This document shows positions 50,198 through 64,000 of a stretch of DNA of 64,000 nucleotides, piece by piece. Under the pieces are notes generated by a model. That model searched no databases. It was not told the origin of the DNA and saw only the letters and a list, made by a program, of their open reading frames with translations. A program made the translations under genes and the position numbers. Location: positions 3,286,001 to 3,350,000 of the forward strand of contig CDRNST010000104.1 of assembly GCA_977016875.1 (NCBI GenBank). The letters run 5' to 3'. Position 1 is the stretch's first letter. Each line of letters begins with the position of its first letter. This DNA comes from Pavona decussata. Its lineage: Eukaryota.

Positions 50198-50580
50198 ACA
50201 GCATTAGAATTTTTTATAGACGCCGGTGGTACAAAGGGTGAATATATAAGGGTGGTCTGTTTGATAAATTATTATCGATTGAAGTACGCAAATCATTTTG
50301 ATAGAAATTTTTTTGTAATTAAATGACTTATCCTTATTCATCCTTTGAACAACTGGAAACAGTTTTTTTCCCTTAAAGAGTAGAGTTATTAAATGTTGCA
50401 GAATCACCTCTTATAAATAGTGTGTCAAGTAACCCTGCAATTTTGTTGACGGATAGCACTGAACTCACTTTTCATCGTAAGCACAAGTCATTTAAAAGAG
50501 ATTTGAGGTTTGGCTTAAGGCAATTGTTCTATCTTCGGAGTTGAAGCGTTTTGTTTTTACAATAGATTTTTTAATCGAAG

Positions 50581-51144
50581 CAAGGGTCCGAATTTCGGAC
50601 CCCTAGACTTAAAGTAAATTGTTTTGAAAAACGCATTTTCTGCGGATTTAGTTGAACCAAGGGTCCGAATTTCGGACCCCTAGACTTAAAGTAAATTGTT
50701 TTGAAAAACGCATTTTCTGCGGATTTAGTTGAATCAAGGGTCCGAATTTCGGACCCCTAGACTGAAAGTGAAGAATTTTTAACAACGCATTTTCTGCGGA
50801 TTTAGTTGAGCCAAGGGTCCGAATTTCGAACCCCTGGAATTAAAATGAATTATTTTTAAAAACGCATTTTCTGCGGATTTAGTTGAACCAAGGGTCCGAA
50901 TTTCGGACCCCTGGAATTAAAGTGAATTATTTTTAAAAACGCATTTTCTGCGGATTTAGTTGAACCAAGGGTCCGAGTTTCGGACCCCTGGAATTAAAGT
51001 GAATTATTTTTAAAAACGCACTTTCTGCGGATTTAGTTGAGCCAAGGGTCCGAATTTCGGACCCCTGGAATTAAAGTGAATTATTTTTAAAAACGCACTT
51101 TCTGCGGATTTAGTTGAACCAAGGGTCCGAATTTCGGACCCCTT
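50581..51144. repeat. Right subterminal hairpin array, copy 2
   Basis: Same as 39857-40420. Confidence 0.9.
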
Positions 51145-54100
51145 GATTTAGACAAATAAGACTTAAGATTACTTAAATGGCTAATTTGTGAGGACAATAA
51201 AAATCACTCCGCTGAAAAGAAGTTTTCTTGATGTGTTAACTTTTTACTCCGTAGGAATCGACAAAAACTTAACTTTAAAAATTCATCTCCGCACAAATAG
51301 CATAAAAATGACACTTTCTTTGGAAAATTGAAACTTTGGAAAAACTGAAAATAGTTTGGAAAGCGTTCCCAGAGACAGGAGCAGATCAACTGAAGTAAAC
51401 TAGTGCAAAAGGAACATCGCCGGTCACAAGTCTTCCTTGTCAATAGCCGATGTAGAAACCGAAATTGAACTTATTCTGACAAGAATGTGTATCTCCTTCA
51501 CCACGAATGTTTATCTCCTTCACTTTTCGGAATTGACGATTTGTCTTCGACACCGTTTGTCTCTGGGCATTGGCTGGCGTCGAGGTCAGTTCAAATAAGT
51601 GTCAAATTTCTCCGCCGGTATCGAGCCATGACAGCCAGGCGCAAAAAGTTGCAAAACTAGAACGAGGACTTGGAAAAAATTCGTGGCATTTGCTATGGAA
51701 GAAACTAGGACTATTTATTCCAGTTTGTTCAGGTATGCATTTACATCATTTCCATTATCTTTTATGTATAGTAAACTGAAAAAACATTCGGTCTTTTCCA
51801 GCACAAAATATTAGTATTCAGATGTATTTTCAGTTCATCAGATGCGGAGAAAGCCGTTAATTAGATTACACGTGAAGTTTTCAGTGCTATTTATTTATTA
51901 TTTTTATTTTTCTGTGCTTGGAACCCTAGTTCTAGTGCTACTGACTGTGGTGGACAACTTTTTGTTCACTACCTCGTAAAAAGGTCCTTTTCTTGAGCAA
52001 AGTAAGACATCATAGTTAGAGCTTTTCAAGCTTGTGTAACGTCCACGCTAAAGACTTATTTTCCTTATTAAAGGAAAGTATTGAAAACTTTTCAATTGAC
52101 GGAAAAGAAGCCTGATCCCAGCTCTAAAAACTGAGTGTGAGGTTTGTGTCTTCGCCACGCCCTAAAGAGGCCTAATGCTAGGAGTTTTAGGTCTGCATGC
52201 ACCGTCCTTTAATCTTTAGAACAAGGGAAGCAGCTTAGGATGGTCTAAGTGAAATGAAGAGGCTGAAATTAAAAAGAAATAAGGTTATGTATCTAATTAA
52301 GCCACCCCACCCCCCTTCCCCCTCTATCTTAGGAAGAAGTAAATTTTCGCTCTACACTTCAATCAGTGAGTGTAGGTTTTTAAGTCTGTTCCTCCGGTGT
52401 ATCTTTCGCATTGACGGTTTTTGTTGCTGGTCGCTACGAAAAAGAAACGTCAAAAAAAGAACTACGGGTATTAGTCATTTGCGCAAAAGTTGTCACAAAG
52501 AGTTCGTTATTCTAGATAAGCAGCTGGTAAACGCTTCCGTAACAAGGGGAGGGGCAGGGGGGCTCGAGCCCTGACCCCCCCCCCCCCCGAATTTTAAGAA
52601 GTATAAAAAAAAAACCAATGTGTCAAAAAATAAATAATTAAAAAACAGTAATAATGTACAACAATCAATCTTAAATTCTGACGCTGCAAGTGCCTTCTCA
52701 CAACCTTTAATAAATTGTTTATTACCTGACAGTTTCCTCCGCTAACATTTGGCTTTTATACAACAGCAGCAAAGGCAGTCCTTCCTTATGAATCGGAAAT
52801 AAGAACCAAAATCCTCATGACCGATTTGTGTTAGTTAGTAGGGAGTTAAAGATAAGATGACGGTGATGGTAGCGAATTCGAAAACATCATAAAGAGAATT
52901 CGCGTTCTTTTAAACTTCATCGCGATAATTCCAGCTCCCACCTTTTTTTTTTTTTTTTTTTAATTTTGGGCGAATCTTCCTGCGGACGGATTCTTACTGC
53001 CTGATTCCAAGTTCACTGGAAAAATAGAAAGGGAAAGTTGTCGTCGTCTTTTTACGTCCTCCTTCAAACGTGAACAAGTTAGGCAATTTTACGTAGTAGT
53101 CCGTACAGTGTGGAGGGGGACAGGGGGGCGGGAGCCCGGGAGAATAGGGGGCGGGAGGGGTACGGGAGACGGGAGAGGAAAGGGCGGGAGGCGGGAGTTC
53201 TAAGAGGACAGGAAGCGGGAGAGCAATACAAAACGGTGAATTTCTTTACTTATTAGTGCGTTAGAATACTATCAAAAAAAGAACTCAACAATGTTGTACA
53301 ATGTTATTTGTCTTCCATATAGCGTCCTCCAAGGCTTTACACAATATTTTATATCCGAGGGCACACGAAAATTCGTGCTCAGGCGATAAACAGGGTTACT
53401 TCCGGTGAAATTGTAAACCCTTCCGTGGTGTTACGCCATAGCTCATGAAATGTCAAGCGTGGCATGCGTACACGTGTGAGTGCCGCGCAAGTTTTTAGAA
53501 GTCTCAAAAGAGGTGAGCAAGGCGAGCAAGTACGCGTCTTGTAAATTTAGTATCAGAGATATAAAAAAATTAAATGTCGTCAAAGACCATTTTAGTAGTT
53601 CTTAGTATTTCACAGTGCGGTAGTAAGAAATCTGGGGCATGGACGACCTTCTTGGGAGTTAGCTCCCAATGACCGTCAATCAGACTGTACAAAAGATTTT
53701 GATGCATGGTGTATGGGAATTTGCGAACGGAATGCTGTTTCAGTGAGCACGTGGAGAGTGCGGAGTGGTTCGTTTAACGACACCGTTTTTCGTTTTGGAC
53801 AAGGCAAAATCGATTCCTATTACAATAGGCAGCCAAATAGCATGGGAAGCAGTCAGGAGCGACTCTATAGAAAAGAGGAGTAGGATTAGGAGTAAAAGGA
53901 GATCAGTGCAGCCTCCTCTGCACATTGATGAAGACTTCTTTTTGATGAACAGTTTGTCCGGCCTAATTTCGGATGCTTTTTGCATTTCATGCAGTAATTC
54001 TTTCCTTAGAGCAGTAACCCAGAGATTTAAACCTTGGATTGAAAGTAGGTCCTAAAGTTTCATTTTACCATTTCCCGAACTAAAAGCAATTTTTTCACGC

Positions 54101-54626
54101 CGTTTTAGGGAGTAAGGATATTGAGAAAGATATCAAGATTATAATTAGTGTATCAAGTAAACGCGATGGATCCGCAATAAGGCGCCGAGAATTAGGCAGA
54201 CATACCGAACTCTAACTGGGGCGTTTGGCTGCCAGCTCGCCATGTCTTACTTCCCCATTTGAATTACATGATCCCAACAAATGAATAATTAAGAAAGGCA
54301 ACAACTATTACACTGCACGAAAAGAATGGTTAAACCGTCAAACAAGAAGAACATGTTAGTCAAAAATTAAATACAAACAGCGGTGATAAAAATAATAAAC
54401 TTGTCCATTTTAGCTTGACGTAGCATATGAAACGTCAGGTTACATAAAATGCGCAAGTTTATTATGTTTATCACCGCTGCTTGTATTTTATTTCTGATTA
54501 AGCTACGATGGCTCAAGAACAAAAGTCTCTATGTTGGTCAAAACTTCATTAACTCAGAGTACAAAACCTATCAATAATGTTAACGCTAATCAAAATATAT
54601 ATTGTAAAAAAATGAATAATGAAAGG

Positions 54627-54911
54627 TGTTACTACAGCGGTACTGCAGTAATAGTTTTGTAAGGTCAGCGGATGCATGTCACCAATTTGCTTGGTGACCG
54701 CTCATCCTGGCTCGTAGCCGCCATGTTTTCGTTCTCATCACGAGTGTGATTTTGTTTGGTCTTTATCCGTGTAATCCTTCATCATCCACGTGTGTGGAAG
54801 GCCGTCTGAGTTGTTATCTTAAGTAAAAAGTTTTATCTTACGAATAACAATCAGTCTGTCTTGTCGAAACTCCTTTGGATGTTATAAGTTTGATGTGCGA
54901 AGGCAGCCACA
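54627..54911 (+). repeat. 5' LTR
   Basis: TGTTACTACAGC...GCAGCCACA. AGTAAA poly(A)-signal variant near 54822. Confidence 0.96.
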
Positions 54912-55017
54912 ATAACAACTCACGGAGGATGCGGTTGAAATAACAAGTCAAGTTGTGGTTCTGAGTGAAGTTTAATTCTACCGTAATGACTTTGTTGCTG
55001 GCAGCGACAACTTTGTA

Positions 55018-58000
55018 ATGGATGCTAAAGAAGACGTTTGCGAGAATTCATCGCGTTTAATTGTTGAACTTACGGAGTTAACGAGGGCTGCCGAAGTGGG
55101 GGCATTAAGTGAACAGGAAAATGGTGAGCAAATGGTTGAAGTTCGTAGCAGGAAGCTAACTGAAAAGGGTCGGTACTATCAAACCGAAATCAAAGTTAAA
55201 TCGTTCAAGTCTAAAAGGTCTACGTTTACAGGAACACTAAGGAATACATTGTTGCTTCGAGGACAGTGTAATGAATTATCAACTTGGAAGCAGGAATTTA
55301 GTAGAGCTCAAGTTCTGTGGAGTGAATTCACGGATGCGTATAACGAAATCAGAGAAATTGTTCAAGACGAGGAGTTAGCGAATGTCAGGGACATCTGGGA
55401 GCAAGTCTGTGGTGAGTGGTCTAGTTTTGAAAGGGATGTGAGGGATGAAATTAGATACTTGGAACAAACAGTTCTGGAGTCTGGTTCTGTCAGTTCTAAG
55501 GGTTCCAAGAAGAGTAAATTGACCAAAACCAATAAATCAAATGTGGATACTGTACTTTCAACCAAGGTAGATAAGTACAAGATACAACAGGAAGAAGCGG
55601 CCTTGAAGGTTAAGTTAGCCTTTGTGGAGCAAGAAAAAGCTCTAAAACTAGAGAAGTTAATGCAGGAACAAAAACTAGAAGAGCTCAGACTGAAGATGGA
55701 GCTTGAACTAAGCAGAGCCAAGTTAAGTGTATTCGAAGAGATTGAAAAGGAGCAAACACCCTCGCTTCAGGATGAAGACTTAGCTACTCTTCCTTCTGAT
55801 AGTAAGGGCGAAGGAGTTAAAAGGTTCTTACAATCTCTTCCAGTACCTACCAGTGCTAATGTGGTCTCCACGTCAGTTCAGTCCTATGCCCAAGTTTCTC
55901 TAGCGCCAGTTTTAACAACTACATCCACACCTAAGTCAACCACATGTAATTTGCGGGCATCAGCTCCATCGTTCTCTCCAGCAGCTGTGACAAACTCAGT
56001 ATTTACTGTTCGTCATTTTGAACATAGACATAGCCTTCCCACTCAAGGAGAAGTGCCTAGTTCTCAAACTGTCACACCAACAAGAGGTGATCCTCCTGTA
56101 ACTATCCCTTTTAGTGGTCCATCACCAATTATGTCAGCAGTTGTTGCATCGCCTTCAAGCTACCAGTCTGTTCATCCCCAAGGTCAAGCAAACTCCTTCA
56201 GTGAAGGGTGGGAAAAGGTAGCATCATCACTGGAAAAATGTATGGACAAGTTAACTGAAGCTAACTTAGAACAAAGTACTGTGAGCAAACAATTGTTTGT
56301 CTCTGGACAGCTTCCAAAGATTACCATTCCAATTTTTAGTGGTGACCCCCTGCAATACCCAGTTTGGAAAAGTGCTTTCAATGCTCTAATTGACTCGAGA
56401 CCATTAGAGGCAGACATCAAGTTGAATATGTTGAATCAGTATGTATCAGGAAAGCCAAAACAAGTTGTGGAACACTATCTTCTGATCGGAACAGAAGATG
56501 CTTACCAGAAAGCCAAGTCCGTACTGCAGGAAAGATATGGAAATTGCAATGTTGTTAGCTCAGCCTTCATCAACAAGTTAGATAAATGGCCCAAGATAGG
56601 TCCTAAGGACGCTGTTGCTCTGAGAGAATATTCTGACCTTCTTGATAAAGTCTTAGCTGCCAAGGAAAACATTCCAGCACTTTCTGTACTGGATTATGCG
56701 AAAGAAAATGTGAAGCTATGTGCTAAACTTCCCTACTACTTAGAGACTAAGTGGAGGGATGCAGTTAATCATTGGAGACACACCCATGGAGAAGCTAGTT
56801 ACCCTACCTTTCTCAAGTTTGCGGGTTTCATCAGAGATGCAGCAGATAAGGCGAACATTCCAGAGTTGGAAAGCCTGTCTACATCTAGCAGTCCAAGTTT
56901 TAACAGCAGACAGAAGCCAGATAGGAACAGGGGTAGTTCCCTTGCCACATCAGTCTCGGGCCATAGCAACCGTGAAGCAGATTCTAGTAGTTCTAGTAAA
57001 TCAAGTCGCCCAGGTCCAGCCGATGTGAATAAGTGTCTCTTCTGTGGTGCAGTGCACAAGTTAGATGACTGCAGTGATTTTTGCAGAAGACCTTTCAGTG
57101 AAAGGAGAGATTTCTTCTTCCGTGAACGTTTATGTATGGGCTGTGCAGCCAGTAACAGTCATCAGGTAGCGAACTGCCGAAAGAGATTGAAATGCAGAAC
57201 ATGCTCAGGAATGCATCCCACATGCCTTCACAAGGAACAAACACAAGACAGTGTTGCCGTCTCTAATTGTATGAGTGTATGTTTACTTCCTGATCAAAGC
57301 AGTGGATTTGATCACACCATGATTGTACCAGTGTGGGTCAGGCCAGTGGGAGAGCCAGACAAGGAAGTGTTGCAGTATGCAGTTCTCGATGACCATTCAA
57401 ATGTCAGTTTTGTGTCTCAAACTCTTTGTGAACGGTTAAATCTACAAGGCCCGTCAACTGAACTTCTGTTGACAACAATGCAAGAGCAGAATGCACACGT
57501 TCAAACCAGCAAGATCACTGGGCTAGAAGTTTTGGATTATCACAGGGAGTGTGTTGTAAAAATGCCAGTGGCCTTCACCCGAGAACTTGTTTCAGCCAAT
57601 CGATCGCAGATTCCCAAACCTGAAGTGGCCAGAGAATGGCAACATTTGAAGCCCATTGCCGATAAGTTGACACCGTACCATCCAGACGCAGAGATTTCTA
57701 TCCTGATTGGAAACAACTGTCCGAGAGCTATCCGACCAAGAGAAATAGTTGCCGGTGAAGATGATGAGCCGTATGCCCAAAGAACCGTACTTGGCTGGGG
57801 AGTGATCGGAAGAGTCTGCAAGTCACGTGATGAGGAAGACAGGGACAGGGGTGTGTGCAATAGAATTACAGCTTCAGAAGTCCATAGCCGCTTTGCGTTC
57901 ACTACGAAGGCCAAAGAGATTGTTGACCCGGAGAAGGTTCTACATGTGCTAGAAACTGACTTTGTTGAGACAAGTACTAAGAACAAACCTTATTCCATAG

Positions 58001-61000
58001 AAGATGAGAGATTCCTAAGGATTCTAGAGAACGGAGTGAAGAAACGACCAGATGGACATTATGAAATGCCCCTTCCATTGAAGTCAAACAATGTGTGTCT
58101 ACCCAACAATCGCCAGCTTGCTGTAAAGAGGTGGAACCAGCTGAATGCCAGATTCAAGAAGAATCCGAAGTTCTTTGCAGACTACCAGATCTTTATGAAG
58201 GACTTAATTTCTCAATGTGCAGAAAGAGTTCCTGTAGATCGTCTTGAAGTACAAGATGGTAAAGTCAATTATGTCCCACATACAGGAGTCTACCACCCAA
58301 AGAAACCAGGACAGATCAGAGTGGTGTTTGATTGTTCAGCCCAGTTTAACGGAGTCAGCCTCAACGACAACTTGCTACAAGGCCCTGACTTTATGAACGA
58401 TCTGTTAGGAATCCTGTGTCGTTTCCGCCAGGAAAGCGTTGCATTTATGACGGACATCAAGAGCATGTTCCACCAGTTCGTAGTTGCTGAAGAGCACAGA
58501 GACCTGTTGCGTTTCTTGTGGTGGCGGGATGGGGACCCGTCAAATGAAGTAGTTGAGTACCGTATGAAAGTTCACCTGTTCGGAGCCAGTAGTTCCCCAG
58601 GTTGTGCGAACTTCGGGCTTAGGCGAGCAGCTGACGATGGTGAAGAAGAGTTTGGTGCGGATGCAGCTGCGTTTATACGCAGGGACTTCTACGTAGATGA
58701 TGGGTTGAAGTCCGTTTCAACAGTTCCTGAAGCCATCCAATTGATCAAAGCCAGCCAAGCCATCTGTGACAAAGCAGGGCTCAGATTACACAAGATAGTG
58801 TCAAACAAGAAAGAAGTTCTTGAGGCTATTCCGGTTGATGACCATGCAAAGGGAATCAAGGAACTGAACTTAGCCGTAGATCCTTTGCCTATTGAGAGAG
58901 CCCTGGGTGTGACGTGGTGTGTTGAGAACGATAGTTTTCGGTTCCGTATTGACTTTCGTGATCGCCCTTTAACTCGGCGAGGTGTCTTGTCGACTATTGG
59001 TTCTATCTATGATCCTAACGGTTACATAGCCCCTGTCACACTCAAAGGAAAGCAGATACTCCAGCAGATGTGCAAAGATAAGTTAGACTGGGATAGCCCT
59101 GTCCCTGAGTATCTACACCCACAGTGGGAAAAGTGGCGACAAGAAGTCGTAGAGTTGGAGAAGCTGGAGATACAGCGATGTTTCAAACCGAATAACTTTG
59201 GCTCCGTGAAAGCTGTGGAGATGCACTACTTTTCAGATGCTTCAATGGAGGGCTACGGTCAGTGCTCTTATCTTAGACTGATTAACGAACATGACCAAGT
59301 TCATTGCTCTTTCGTTGTCGGAAAGGCACGGGTAACGCCTCTAAAGCACAAGACCATCCCAAGGCTGGAGTTAGCAGCTGCTACCACCTCAGCAAGAATA
59401 AGTGAGTTTGTGAGAAGAGAGTTGGAGTACCCAGAGATCAAAGAGTTCTTCTGGACAGACAGCCGAGTAGTTCTCGGATACATTAACAATGAAGCTAAGA
59501 GATTTCACGTTTATGTCGCTAACAGGGTGCAGCAGATCCGTGACCTAACTGATCCTAACTCGTGGTTCTATGTTGACACAAGCAACAACCCAGCAGATTA
59601 CGCGTCACGAGGACTCACAGCAAAGCAGCTGGTAGAAGGTTCGCGTTGGTTAACCGGTCCTGAATTTCTATGGAAGAGCGGACCCTGTAAACCTGAAAAT
59701 GTGGAGGTGTCTCCCCTTCAAGAGTCCGACCCGGAGGTGAAGAAAGTGTCCGTATTGATTACGGAAGTCAAGAGTGTTGTTCCCTTTCCTGATCACTTCG
59801 AGACGAGCAGACTGGATGGTGTATCCAGCTGGTACCAAGCTATGAAGGTCATAGCGCTATGTTTACGACTGAAGTCCAAGTTTCAAAGAAGAGAAGTGAA
59901 GAAGCCCAGGAAACCAGTGACAAGGTCAGGGGCAGATGCTGAGAAATCTGTGCAAAAGGTTGCACTGTCAGAGCTTCAAGGAGCAGAGAAGACCATCATC
60001 CGGTGTTTGCAGTACGAACATTTCTATGAAGAACTTCAAATTCTCTGCAACCTGAATGTGACTGACGGAGAAACAAACAGAAGTCAAGCTAGAAGAAGAA
60101 ATCAAGCATTGCGAAAGTCCAGTTCGCTGTACAAACTGGATCCCTTTGTGGACCAAGATGGTCTGATTCGTGTTGGAGGACGTATCAGAAGAGCAAATTT
60201 ACCAGTTGATATGAAGCATCCAGTCATTATTCCGCGAAAAGGTCATTTGACTGAACTGTTGATTCAACATCACCACTTGAAAGTGAACCACATGGGTCGC
60301 GGGATAACGCATAACGAGCTGCGCCAGAATGGCTATTGGTTGATCAGTGGATCTTCGGGAGTGTCAAGATTCATATCAAGCTGTGTAACGTGTAGACGGC
60401 TACGTAGACCCACAGAGCAGCAGAAGATGGCTTGTCTTCCTGTGGACAGACTCGAACCAGCACCTCCATTTTCCTATTGTGCAGTTGATTTCTTCGGACC
60501 GTTCATTGTCAAAGAAAGAAGGAGTGACGTTAAACGTTATGGAGTATTGTTCACGTGCATGGGGTCAAGAAGTGTTCATCTTGAGACTGCCAATTCACTG
60601 GACAGTTCTTCCTTTATCAATGCGCTGAGTCGTTTCATGAATCGGAGAGGCGCTGTCAGGCAGCTGAGGTCTGACCAAGGGACAAATTTCGTTGGTGCAC
60701 GGAATGAATTGAAGTCAGCTTTATCTGAGATGGACCAAGATCACGTTCAAGAGTATTTGCTAAGGAATGGATGCGAGTGGATCCCATTCAAAATGAACCT
60801 GCCCCACTCTAGCCACATGGGAGGAACCTGGGAAAGGTTGATTCGCAGTGTACGCAATGCATTGGAACCACTGTTGTTGAAGGCTGGGAACCAACTCGAT
60901 GATGAAACTTTGCGCACATTTATGACGGAAGTCGAGTGCATTATCAACTCAAGACCTCTCAGTGTTGACTACCTATGTAATGCAGATGCACCAGAGCCGT

Positions 61001-61494
61001 TAACACCAAACCACCTCCTCACTATGAAGCCAAAACGAGTGCTACCACCACCAGGAGAATTTCAACGAGCGGATGTGTACTGTCGCAGGCGTTGGAGAAG
61101 GGTGCAGTATTTCGCGAACGAATTTTGGCTAAGATGGCGCAAAGAGTATCTTCAATCGTTACAAGTCAGACGGAAGTGGGTTCAGCCAAAGAGAAATCTT
61201 ACTGTTGGTGACGTGGTGATTTCCAAAGAGAATGAGGGAACCCGTAACAAGTGGCCGCTCGGCAGAGTAGTGCAGACTTACCCTAGTGAAGATGGTTTCG
61301 TCAGAAAGGTCAGGTTGCTGATGGCAGACGGAGATTTGGATGATCGTGGCAAACGCCAAAGCCCGCCGTCATATCTAGACAGACCTATACATAAGCTTGT
61401 TCTACTGTTGACGGCAGGTGAAGTGGTCGAGGAGGATGTCCTTCACCGGGAGACCAGGGAAGTCCCCATCGAGGAGCCAACGAAGAACACTTGA
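55018..61494 (+). CDS. BEL/Pao Gag-Pol polyprotein (2158 aa)
   Basis: Gag FSGDPLQYPVWK; three Cys/His knuckles (CLFCGAVHKLDDC, CMGCAASNSHQVANC, CRTCSGMHPTCLH); protease LDDHS; RT FYVDD; RNase H HYFSDAS and TIPRLEL; integrase HH..CVTC, VDFFGP, SDQGTNF, GGTWE; C-terminal WPLGRV. Confidence 0.97.
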   Translation: MDAKEDVCENSSRLIVELTELTRAAEVGALSEQENGEQMVEVRSRKLTEKGRYYQTEIKVKSFKSKRSTFTGTLRNTLLLRGQCNELSTWKQEFSRAQVLWSEFTDAYNEIREIVQDEELANVRDIWEQVCGEWSSFERDVRDEIRYLEQTVLESGSVSSKGSKKSKLTKTNKSNVDTVLSTKVDKYKIQQEEAALKVKLAFVEQEKALKLEKLMQEQKLEELRLKMELELSRAKLSVFEEIEKEQTPSLQDEDLATLPSDSKGEGVKRFLQSLPVPTSANVVSTSVQSYAQVSLAPVLTTTSTPKSTTCNLRASAPSFSPAAVTNSVFTVRHFEHRHSLPTQGEVPSSQTVTPTRGDPPVTIPFSGPSPIMSAVVASPSSYQSVHPQGQANSFSEGWEKVASSLEKCMDKLTEANLEQSTVSKQLFVSGQLPKITIPIFSGDPLQYPVWKSAFNALIDSRPLEADIKLNMLNQYVSGKPKQVVEHYLLIGTEDAYQKAKSVLQERYGNCNVVSSAFINKLDKWPKIGPKDAVALREYSDLLDKVLAAKENIPALSVLDYAKENVKLCAKLPYYLETKWRDAVNHWRHTHGEASYPTFLKFAGFIRDAADKANIPELESLSTSSSPSFNSRQKPDRNRGSSLATSVSGHSNREADSSSSSKSSRPGPADVNKCLFCGAVHKLDDCSDFCRRPFSERRDFFFRERLCMGCAASNSHQVANCRKRLKCRTCSGMHPTCLHKEQTQDSVAVSNCMSVCLLPDQSSGFDHTMIVPVWVRPVGEPDKEVLQYAVLDDHSNVSFVSQTLCERLNLQGPSTELLLTTMQEQNAHVQTSKITGLEVLDYHRECVVKMPVAFTRELVSANRSQIPKPEVAREWQHLKPIADKLTPYHPDAEISILIGNNCPRAIRPREIVAGEDDEPYAQRTVLGWGVIGRVCKSRDEEDRDRGVCNRITASEVHSRFAFTTKAKEIVDPEKVLHVLETDFVETSTKNKPYSIEDERFLRILENGVKKRPDGHYEMPLPLKSNNVCLPNNRQLAVKRWNQLNARFKKNPKFFADYQIFMKDLISQCAERVPVDRLEVQDGKVNYVPHTGVYHPKKPGQIRVVFDCSAQFNGVSLNDNLLQGPDFMNDLLGILCRFRQESVAFMTDIKSMFHQFVVAEEHRDLLRFLWWRDGDPSNEVVEYRMKVHLFGASSSPGCANFGLRRAADDGEEEFGADAAAFIRRDFYVDDGLKSVSTVPEAIQLIKASQAICDKAGLRLHKIVSNKKEVLEAIPVDDHAKGIKELNLAVDPLPIERALGVTWCVENDSFRFRIDFRDRPLTRRGVLSTIGSIYDPNGYIAPVTLKGKQILQQMCKDKLDWDSPVPEYLHPQWEKWRQEVVELEKLEIQRCFKPNNFGSVKAVEMHYFSDASMEGYGQCSYLRLINEHDQVHCSFVVGKARVTPLKHKTIPRLELAAATTSARISEFVRRELEYPEIKEFFWTDSRVVLGYINNEAKRFHVYVANRVQQIRDLTDPNSWFYVDTSNNPADYASRGLTAKQLVEGSRWLTGPEFLWKSGPCKPENVEVSPLQESDPEVKKVSVLITEVKSVVPFPDHFETSRLDGVSSWYQAMKVIALCLRLKSKFQRREVKKPRKPVTRSGADAEKSVQKVALSELQGAEKTIIRCLQYEHFYEELQILCNLNVTDGETNRSQARRRNQALRKSSSLYKLDPFVDQDGLIRVGGRIRRANLPVDMKHPVIIPRKGHLTELLIQHHHLKVNHMGRGITHNELRQNGYWLISGSSGVSRFISSCVTCRRLRRPTEQQKMACLPVDRLEPAPPFSYCAVDFFGPFIVKERRSDVKRYGVLFTCMGSRSVHLETANSLDSSSFINALSRFMNRRGAVRQLRSDQGTNFVGARNELKSALSEMDQDHVQEYLLRNGCEWIPFKMNLPHSSHMGGTWERLIRSVRNALEPLLLKAGNQLDDETLRTFMTEVECIINSRPLSVDYLCNADAPEPLTPNHLLTMKPKRVLPPPGEFQRADVYCRRRWRRVQYFANEFWLRWRKEYLQSLQVRRKWVQPKRNLTVGDVVISKENEGTRNKWPLGRVVQTYPSEDGFVRKVRLLMADGDLDDRGKRQSPPSYLDRPIHKLVLLLTAGEVVEEDVLHRETREVPIEEPTKNT

Positions 61495-61696
61495 AGAGCG
61501 ACATGATTATGACAGTGAACATTGCAGTTGAACGTTAAATTTATTAACTTGTTGATCATTTCAGTAACTGCTGCGGAGCAGTTATGTGAATTTTCGAGAC
61601 ACTACTGTTTGCGGAGCATTTAACTACTAGTTTATTGAAGTTTAAACCTTTAAGTTTATTGTTGTTTGTAACTGCACGGATGCAGTTGAGGAGCCA

Positions 61697-61981
61697 TGTT
61701 ACTACAGCGGTACTGCAGTAATAGTTTTGTAAGGTCAGCGGATGCATGTCACCAATTTGCTTGGTGACCGCTCATCCTGGCTCGTAGCCGCCATGTTTTC
61801 GTTCTCATCACGAGTGTGATTTTGTTTGGTCTTTATCCGTGTAATCCTTCATCATCCACGTGTGTGGAAGGCCGTCTGAGTTGTTATCTTAAGTAAAAAG
61901 TTTTATCTTACGAATAACAATCAGTCTGTCTTGTCGAAACTCCTTCGGATGTTATAAGTTTGATGTGCGAAGGCAGCCACA
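61697..61981 (+). repeat. 3' LTR
   Basis: Matches the 5' LTR except TCCTTCGG vs TCCTTTGG. Confidence 0.96.
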
Positions 61982-64000
61982 AAAGGCCTGAGAATGGTAC
62001 GTCCTGGTACAGCTTTATGACTAATACGGCTTTTAAAGCCTTCTAATTTACTTGGGGACGGGAGAAACGCGAAAAAGGGCGGGAGGCGGGAGGCAAAGGT
62101 ACGGGAGGCGGGAGGTTCCGACCCCCCTGTCCCCCCCCCCCTACAGTGACGGCAAAGGGTCGAAAAGAAATGTACCACAAAGTGTGATGCAAGTGCAAAG
62201 TTATTGTTTTGCTTACTACATCTGCTCTTTTTTTGATGTTCTCAACTTGCTTCCCCCCCCCCCTCCCAATCCCAGTTGTTTTAGCCTGACTACGGGCCTG
62301 TTAAAACAATTCTTCCCGTCCCCCACCCCTTCCCTAGTGCCTGCTGCCATATCTCAGTGACAATCTAACTAATTTGCATATTTGCTGTCACGCAACATTG
62401 TTAGACATGTCTGAATCTTTCCGATTTCTTCTCTTCCCGTCGATAATGGATAAAAGGAAGCGAGGGGAAAACAGAAATCTTTCTGATAAAGCAAGATAGG
62501 AGCATTATTGAAGGCCTTGAAGCTGCAATTGGCAGTTTGCCCGTCGCATCGGGTTGTTTGCACGGGCAGTTTGATTCCGCCAAACGATGTCGTGGTCGAA
62601 ATTAGCCAACTTTAACGACCTTTTGTGAAACTCTCAATGGAGAACCCAGCCTGATATTAAGGTATGAAGTACATCAAGGCAATTGTTACTGAAAGCCAAA
62701 GTGTGAGAATATTTCGAGTTATACCACATACTAAAATGTGTGCTTGACCTTTGGCACCACATTACAGAGTTCGCCAGCTGTAAAAATATGTCGCAGGTTT
62801 TAAATTGTTTAAATTTGCCAGATAACATTAGAACCACAAATTCATCGGTTATCATATCAGAAAGAGATTGTCTTTCGATATAAGGAATCCCGATTGTCGT
62901 ACGCTTCTTCTAAAACAAACGCCGAGACAATTAAAAGTGGTGATTTTCCGGTTTTAAATTCAATCAATTTTCAGGTCACAAGGCTTCGATCGATTTTCCT
63001 GATTTTCTCAAAACGCAAATGTTTCTGGCCAATTTAAGCCACACCATGATTCTTACTTTAGTAAAACCTTATTATGGACAAAAGATGAAAGAAATCGACT
63101 CTGCTAAGTTTCGCCAGAAAATTCAGATTTTGCTTGATTTTTCCTGACCGCCGCTCTTAAATAACTTATGAGATAAGGCAATTAAATAACCCTCAACGTA
63201 AAGATGGATCAATAAACATCAAGCTTTCGTTCTACTGTCTTTTGCCCATCCCACTTGAGCTTACTCAGTGATGCGATATCGGAATTCACACAGCATGGTT
63301 AAATGTGTAAGAAGAAAGGAAATGTTTAGTTTTTAATGATTAAACCACTTCAACTATTCACGAAAAAAGAGAATCATACTAGGTAGTTCATCTAGTTAAG
63401 AAGCTAGCTGGTCCATCGAGGATTACTATCGTTGTATTTTGTTACTTTTGCAGGTACCCTTTTATTAAAGGCATATAATTTGAGAGAAGCACCTCGACAC
63501 TTACTGCTTTCTTAAAGCAGACAAAAAGGAAGCAAAGTATATCAATCGAATGACGATTAGTCTTAAGAACACTGCATCTTCACACAGTATGGTAGTTTTC
63601 CTTCTCAATCCAATCAATTTTAACGAAAACAAACAACCAGAACAATTAATTTACAACCAATAACTTTTGAAATAGATATTAGCACAGGCTCCATAACCAA
63701 GAAAAAAATAACAATTGTAGTAAAACTATAGAATTTGAAATAATCATCTAATATTTCTTCTTATCTGACTGTTTTAGGACATATTTCAAGTTTAAATTAA
63801 TGACGAAGTGATAGTACACTTGACGTGTATGATGTCAGGCAGTTCTTTAAAGAAAGTACCTGATCTGAGGCAACAGCTGCAGTTCTCTACTTTTCTTAAT
63901 TAATATAGTATCCTCTTCCTTTGAGCAGAGAAACAGGATTGGAGGAATTCACCGACGTATCGAGAGGTCACCAGCTTTGGGTGCATTGACTCGAGAGCAA

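Follow-up and report, generated by a model that had tools for sequence, protein, structure and literature searches.

Tf1, an LTR retrotransposon of S. pombe, begins reverse transcription from its own transcript: the first 11 nt of the RNA pair with its primer-binding site (PBS), and RNase H cuts between nucleotides 11 and 12 (PMC7175516, PMC4600332). The Tj1 element of S. japonicus is predicted to prime as Tf1 does (PMC4600332). Self-priming has also been predicted for the vertebrate sushi group, for the Tcn1 clade and for the plant Ty1/copia TAR elements (Houba, Osr-1), and there, as in the present work, the prediction is drawn from complementarity between the PBS and the element's own LTR together with a missing tRNA match (PMC6317226). 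The BEL/Pao elements (Belpaoviridae), on the other hand, are described by the ICTV as tRNA-primed, with an 18-nt PBS for tRNA-Arg or tRNA-Gly, and their replication is called 'poorly understood' in the same account (PMC8742986). Achilles, a BEL/Pao element of the olive fly, carries a PBS for tRNA-Tyr (PMC4580426), and PBSs are not discussed by De la Chaux and Wagner (2011). A full-text search, with subscription literature outside its coverage, returned nothing that links BEL/Pao elements to self-priming.

The element reported here lies in a 64,000-nt stretch of DNA from Pavona decussata (the window), in which self-comparison and a target-site duplication (TSD) define an intact LTR retrotransposon at positions 54627-61981. 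Its two LTRs are 285 nt each, have TG...CA ends and differ by a single mismatch at 54876. Pfam models match the single gag-pol ORF at the gag domain DUF1759 (PF03564, aa 440-549) and at the Pao-type peptidase Peptidase_A17 (PF05380, E = 1e-48, aa 1319-1482), and an integrase match is located C-terminal to that of the peptidase. The Integrase_H2C2 zinc-binding domain (PF17921, aa 1744-1795) scores 23.4 bits, just below its 25.5-bit cut-off, and DUF5641 (PF18701) is found C-terminally at aa 2024-2130. On the strength of these domains, the LTRs, the TSD and the polypurine tract (PPT), the element is a BEL/Pao (Belpaoviridae) LTR retrotransposon, and the Pfam domains bear out the same assignment in the preliminary description of this DNA. 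Membership of the Tf1/sushi lineage, which has the polyprotein of a Ty3/gypsy chromovirus, is ruled out by the BEL/Pao Pfam profile. PF05380 is present in all of the best 120 protein homologues. About ten full-length copies of the element's family are found in the genome (602 Mb, 1180 contigs), and candidates for Pao peptidases number well over a thousand. Coordinates of the features are given in Table 1, together with the PBS and LTR-site sequences of relatives.

Table 1. Features of the element, by window position, and paired PBS and LTR-site sequences of related elements
Feature	Position	Strand	Basis or remark
Target-site duplication AAAGG, 5 bp, left	54622-54626	+	Both element flanks
Target-site duplication AAAGG, 5 bp, right	61982-61986		Both element flanks
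5' LTR, 285 nt, TGT...ACA	54627-54911	+	LTR pair and TSD
Putative U3, upstream of candidate RNA start	54627-54806	+	Deduced from site position
Candidate self-primer, putative first 11 nt of R	54807-54817	+	Exact PBS complement
CT directly 3' of primer segment	54818-54819	+	Invariant in 10/10 clade-A relatives
Poly(A) signal variant AGTAAA	54822-54827	+	AATAAA or ATTAAA at the same place in relatives
Predicted U5 hairpin, then 5-nt spacer CCACA before PBS	54870-54906	+	MFE and centroid fold
Candidate PBS, 11 nt directly after LTR	54912-54922	+	Complement to 54807-54817
Near copy of PBS, one mismatch	54940-54950	+	String comparison
gag-pol ORF, single, uninterrupted, 2158 aa	55018-61494	+	ORF list and Pfam
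Polypurine-tract region ending ...GAGGAGCCA, adjoins 3' LTR	61685-61696	+	Relatives: AGGGGAGCCA
3' LTR	61697-61981	+	Own copy of primer segment at 61877-61887
Same-genome family			PBS GTCAAAGACTG, LTR site CAGTCTTTGAC
Same-genome family			PBS GTCGAATTTCTG, LTR site CAGAAATTCGAC
Same-genome family			PBS GTAAAAACTCG, LTR site CGAGTTTTTAC
Same-genome family			PBS GTAAAAACT, LTR site AGTTTTTAC
Same-genome family			PBS GTTTCGAAAA, LTR site TTTTCGAAAC
Oculina, Patiria, S. purpuratus, Diadema			PBS ATAACAATC, LTR site GATTGTTAT
Actinostola			PBS ATAAAAAGACA, LTR site TGTCTTTTTAT
Second Actinostola element			PBS GTAAAACT, LTR site AGTTTTAC
Lytechinus			PBS ATAGAATACAA, LTR site TTGTATTCTAT
Holothuria			PBS GTAATAACTCT, LTR site AGAGTTATTAC

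Comparison of the LTR termini and the PPT junction of the window copy (54627-54635, 54903-54911 and 61685-61699) with those of relatives (L051-L056) shows that the LTR ends GGCAGCCACA are conserved across phyla, and that the PPT junction, AGGGGAGCCA followed by TGT, hardly varies from cnidarians to echinoderms. The conserved termini and the junction are probably integrase and PPT recognition sites. The two ends of the LTR are inverted repeats of each other (TGTGGCTGC...GCAGCCACA in Oculina). Upstream of the element, the window contains a tandem array of about ten units of 77 nt (50493-51227) and, just upstream of the insertion, a hairpin of ~115 nt with inverted arms of ~35 nt (aaatacaaacagcggtgataa... 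and ...ttatcaccgctgcttgtattt; 54369-54483). The summed contig depth of the bin at 54441-54481 is 7033, against 160-300 on the element, in what is probably a DNA run, and because of this very high depth the hairpin is probably a high-copy MITE-like repeat. Public runs for the element number 21, all in the form of Logan contigs; in the four compared with the element, the contigs are of full-LTR or circular type with the LTRs collapsed, so RNA starts are invisible in them. Contigs of one LTR plus the internal region (7100 nt in run X1; L061 and L062, 7273 nt each) are circularly permuted between runs, and could represent de Bruijn collapse of two LTRs or one-LTR circles.

The sequence immediately 3' of the 5' LTR begins ATAACAAC, and its first 11 bases, ATAACAACTCA at 54912-54922, are the exact reverse complement of TGAGTTGTTAT at LTR positions 181-191 (54807-54817), just as the preliminary description had read them. 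With the PBS position fixed and an offset of 0-3 allowed, an 11-nt match is obtained in only ~3 per 10,000 shuffles of the 16-nt post-LTR window (P about 3e-4). The LTR end is fixed by the TSD, and therefore the minus-strand primer ends opposite 54912-54914. As the bases following 54911 read ATA, the CCA end of a tRNA cannot pair at the PBS. This agrees with the earlier observation that a tRNA PBS starting with TGG is lacking; TGG is absent within 3 nt of the LTR end in the window copy and in all 22 BEL/Pao lineages compared, and an 18-nt PBS of the ICTV type for tRNA-Arg or tRNA-Gly is not present directly after the LTR. The element thus has the protein domains, LTR structure and 5-bp TSD of canonical BEL/Pao elements (those of the ICTV description, Achilles; PMC8742986), and is unlike them in belonging to a clade whose PBS begins ATA, GTA or GTC and is complementary to the element's own LTR.

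Three further pairings had been proposed around this duplex, and all three strings are real. The extension of the helix by CCG/CGG across a bulge can be drawn between 54802-54804 and 54923-54925, but relatives do not conserve it. A single mismatch separates the downstream near copy from the PBS, and in L137, a relative from a metagenome, this copy is not kept as a complement. Similarly, TTGTGGTT, suggested to pair with the end of U5, is present at 54953-54960, and relatives do not preserve its complementarity. Because the complements are not kept, we treat the bulged pairing, the near copy and TTGTGGTT as unsupported as functional add-ons.

In order to compare the site across the group, we examined 20 genomic loci around Pol matches (48-68% identity), defining LTRs by self-comparison; 5-bp TSDs confirm the LTRs at all but one of these loci. 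Protein searches turned up homologues from corals, sea anemones, sea stars, sea urchins, one sea cucumber and Ciona, the nearest (90%) coming from coral metagenome assemblies. DNA was compared for ten named proteins and the 90% relative, and the Acanthaster locus (L059) was rejected as it has no detectable LTR pair. Among 80 loci examined from a metagenome scan with the 16-nt U5/PBS junction, 79 are chance matches and L137 is the sole BEL element. The resulting 22 BEL/Pao lineages consist of 11 same-genome families, 9 named cnidarian, echinoderm or Ciona elements and 2 metagenome contigs.

Most of the same-genome families have the PBS and LTR site laid out as in the window copy with other sequences, and the sister family at 68% identity has ATAACAATC after the LTR and GATTGTTAT within it. 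An exact complement to the own LTR, anchored at the PBS, reaches at least 8 nt in 18/22 lineages, at least 9 nt in 16/22 and at least 10 nt in 10/22, and it lies at offset 0 in most. When each PBS was searched identically against foreign LTRs (430 comparisons), 8-nt matches were seen in ~9%, matches of at least 9 nt in 1.4% and matches of at least 10 nt in none, the maximum being 9 nt; the difference in complement length between own-LTR and cross-element comparisons is highly significant (Mann-Whitney P = 9e-11). Fourteen distinct site words occur, each with a matching PBS in its own element, and at least 8 of them are found inside this one genome. The lineages are related, and lineage counts consequently overstate independence, so the 14 distinct words are the conservative measure.

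Covariation is evident position by position. Across positions 1-9, Watson-Crick pairs fill 89 of 90 cells in the ATA-type clade and 53 of 54 in the GTA/GTC-type clade, with five to six positions in each clade varying among 2-4 types of pair, and sliding the partner by 1-2 nt reduces the count to 21-33 of 90. Compensatory changes are found even among relatives of 82-90% identity: in two close relatives, a JGI contig (82% in gag) and coral-metagenome contigs (90% in pol), ATAACAACTTAGT pairs with ACTAAGTTGTTAT (13 nt) or ACTAAGTTGTTA (12 nt), which amounts to a double change from G:C to A:U relative to the window copy and a longer helix of 12-13 nt. The preliminary description had named covariation across BEL families as a check on its proposal, and loss of the complementarity in relatives as the finding that would speak against it; what we see is the opposite, with pairing maintained by differing sequences in 18 of the 22 lineages, in Cnidaria as well as Echinodermata. 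The remaining four (L037, L042, L050 and the Ciona element, L058) have a short complement only, of 5-7 nt, and no TGG PBS. In L037 and L042, initiator-like motifs (TCAGTTGAC, TCAGTTTAC) either follow a TATAAAA box or precede AATAAA, and the last 5-6 nt of these motifs match the first bases after the respective LTR. The four lineages may thus have very short self-primers or use another primer.

Within the LTRs of the ATA-type clade, the site stands out as a conserved island of 63% pairwise identity, with flanking LTR sequence at 26-30%, the random level. A poly(A) signal is found downstream of the site in 17/18 elements. The window copy conforms to the earlier reading in having AGTAAA just downstream, starting 4 nt past the site, and its two closest relatives have AATAAA and ATTAAA there. 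A pyrimidine-A step at -2..0 of the first paired base is seen in 16/18 elements, compared with a background of 0.38 (P = 1e-5), and in several families the site starts at the A of a TCAGTT initiator-like motif. A TATA box at -40..-18 is a weak feature (4/18 elements, background 0.07). In the window copy, neither a clear TATA box at -30 nor a CA initiator placed exactly at 54806/54807 is seen. Given the position of the site, the pyrimidine-A step and the position of the poly(A) signal, a layout with a U3 of 180 nt, an R of ~40 nt beginning at 54807 and a U5 of ~60 nt would fit. The CT that directly follows the primer segment hints at a defined RNase H cut. In many relatives, short tandem repeats make up the part of R that immediately follows the primer site, with units such as ctcgggtaatcca, ctcaatct, ctacctac, ggagttactgag and ctgaaggt... 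(for example at L051:4812-4860, L053:4737-4770, L054:4729-4760 and, in L057, just after LTR position 373); the corresponding window segment, 54818-54850, lacks such repeats. Repeats of this kind might allow the first strand transfer to occur with a shift in register.

When the RNA from 54807 to 54930 is folded, the MFE and centroid structures are both closed by the 11-bp helix, and the same closing stem is predicted in all ten other elements folded. Overall, the fold energy is unexceptional (z = -1.4). A duplex of this kind could be a conserved long-range RNA structure with a different role, with something else acting as the real primer; cyclisation of the Ty1 CYC5/CYC3 kind, packaging or dimerisation, and masking of the poly(A) signal that the 5' R carries close to the promoter were considered. 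Ty1 requires pairing between sequence adjacent to its PBS and sequence close to the RNA's 3' end (PMC3592414), and the present element is similar to the extent that PBS-region sequence pairs with LTR-derived sequence elsewhere in the RNA. In addition, the poly(A) signal of the window copy falls inside the loop closed by the duplex, and the site could conceivably belong to U3 only. However, Ty1 has a separate PBS for tRNA-iMet with CYC5 downstream of it, whereas here the complementary stretch itself occupies the PBS position, and the element cannot be placed in the CYC5/CYC3 class given that it has no separate tRNA PBS with a complementary box beside it. The duplex is situated exactly where a primer must end, and the pyrimidine-A step that marks the start of the complement is not required by a structural helix. 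Such a role would also leave the element with no primer supplied, and we consider it unlikely.

A second alternative is that a small RNA of the host, be it an internal tRNA fragment of the type used by copia or some other abundant RNA, primes at 54912 and that the copy in the LTR is incidental. Internal tRNA fragments are indeed used by copia-type elements (PMC3592414, PMC6317226), and the GATTGTTAT/ATAACAATC word is common to elements of five species. A host primer for the PBS of the window copy would need the 3' end ...GUUGUUAU-3', and analogous ends would be needed for the other 13 site words. The exact 14-mer CCGTGAGTTGTTAT has 8 genomic matches, 7 of which are in listed copies of the element and 1 elsewhere, and with one mismatch allowed there are 117 matches compared with 203 for the reversed control; therefore, the 14-mer is not part of any multicopy host gene. 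For the 11-mer, the genome has 577 occurrences against 430 for its control. The 14-mer outside the listed full-length copies (G000:C65:414098-414111) may be part of a truncated copy of the element. Neither the window nor any of ten foreign loci contains a tRNA detected by ARAGORN, and no Rfam family was matched, the sole sub-threshold match being to a snoRNA (E = 0.41). If a host RNA were the primer, each host should have few PBS words, or a single one, and the LTR should contain no partner, which is the opposite of what is observed, namely 14 words, at least 8 of them in one genome, each complemented within its own LTR. We regard this possibility as very improbable. Chance complementarity in an AT-rich leader, which could draw on the 8-nt matches among the controls, has next to no likelihood and is refuted for practical purposes by the shuffle test, by the absence of control matches of 10 nt or more and by covariation across phyla.

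Based on the position of the complement, its covariation and the missing tRNA PBS, all of which support the Tf1-like self-priming originally suggested for this BEL lineage, the window element is most likely primed by the 5' end of its own RNA and not by a tRNA. Transcription would start in the 5' LTR at about 54805-54809, giving an R that begins with UGAGUUGUUAU. The first 11 nt of the RNA would then fold back over R-U5 to form a duplex with the PBS, which directly adjoins the final base of U5, so as to close a loop of ~94 nt that contains the U5 hairpin. The element's RNase H would cut after U54817 and before the invariant CU, freeing a 3'-OH; this cut, between 54817 and 54818, is placed by analogy with Tf1 (PMC7175516). 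Reverse transcriptase would extend the primer across U5 and what remains of R (54818 to ~54848), and the resulting minus-strand strong-stop DNA would be transferred to the 3' R. Should the primer remain attached and be copied into the plus strand, as happens in Tf1, the PBS would be rewritten from the start of R in each cycle, and this could explain why the sites are perfectly complementary and yet drift between families.

The element therefore invites direct comparison with Tf1/Tf2 and Tj1. Like those elements, it lacks a tRNA PBS and has a PBS that adjoins U5 and complements ~11 nt at which the element RNA would start (PMC7175516, PMC4600332). The predicted U5 hairpin may correspond to the stem-loop that those elements have beside the duplex (PMC7175516, PMC4600332). 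Unlike Tf1, it is a BEL/Pao element with a Pao peptidase and not a chromovirus of the Ty3/gypsy type, its hosts and those of its relatives are marine animals, and its primer is unrelated in sequence. For Tf1, both the start of the RNA and the RNase H cleavage have been demonstrated; for the window element we infer them, along with retention of the primer, by analogy. The sushi, Tcn1 and TAR elements predicted to self-prime differ from the window element in belonging to the Metaviridae and Pseudoviridae. What appears to be new is the probable use of a known mechanism in a family where it has not been described, with strong support from comparison of sequences. More broadly, self-priming is probably the normal mode of minus-strand initiation in a large clade of marine-invertebrate BEL/Pao elements, in Cnidaria and Echinodermata, with the primer copied back in each cycle and the R start and PBS co-evolving.

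The mode of priming is a defining trait of each retroelement family. If the proposal is correct, Belpaoviridae would be the third family of LTR retroelements with tRNA-independent priming, the ICTV picture of the family as tRNA-primed would be incomplete, and the Tf1 mechanism would extend to animals well outside the vertebrates. It would also explain why PBS finders based on tRNAs miss such elements, and would provide a rule for their annotation, which is to look for a PBS that pairs with the beginning of R of the element itself, with the R-start segment ending in ...TAT followed by CT, or in ...AC. The many natural covariation variants would be available for studying how reverse transcriptase and RNase H recognize the RNA duplex. 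Finally, it has been proposed that the first LTR elements were self-primed (PMC3601003). A self-primed BEL/Pao clade would bear on this idea (PMC3601003), and would speak either for self-priming having arisen repeatedly or for an ancestry of LTR elements in self-primed forms.
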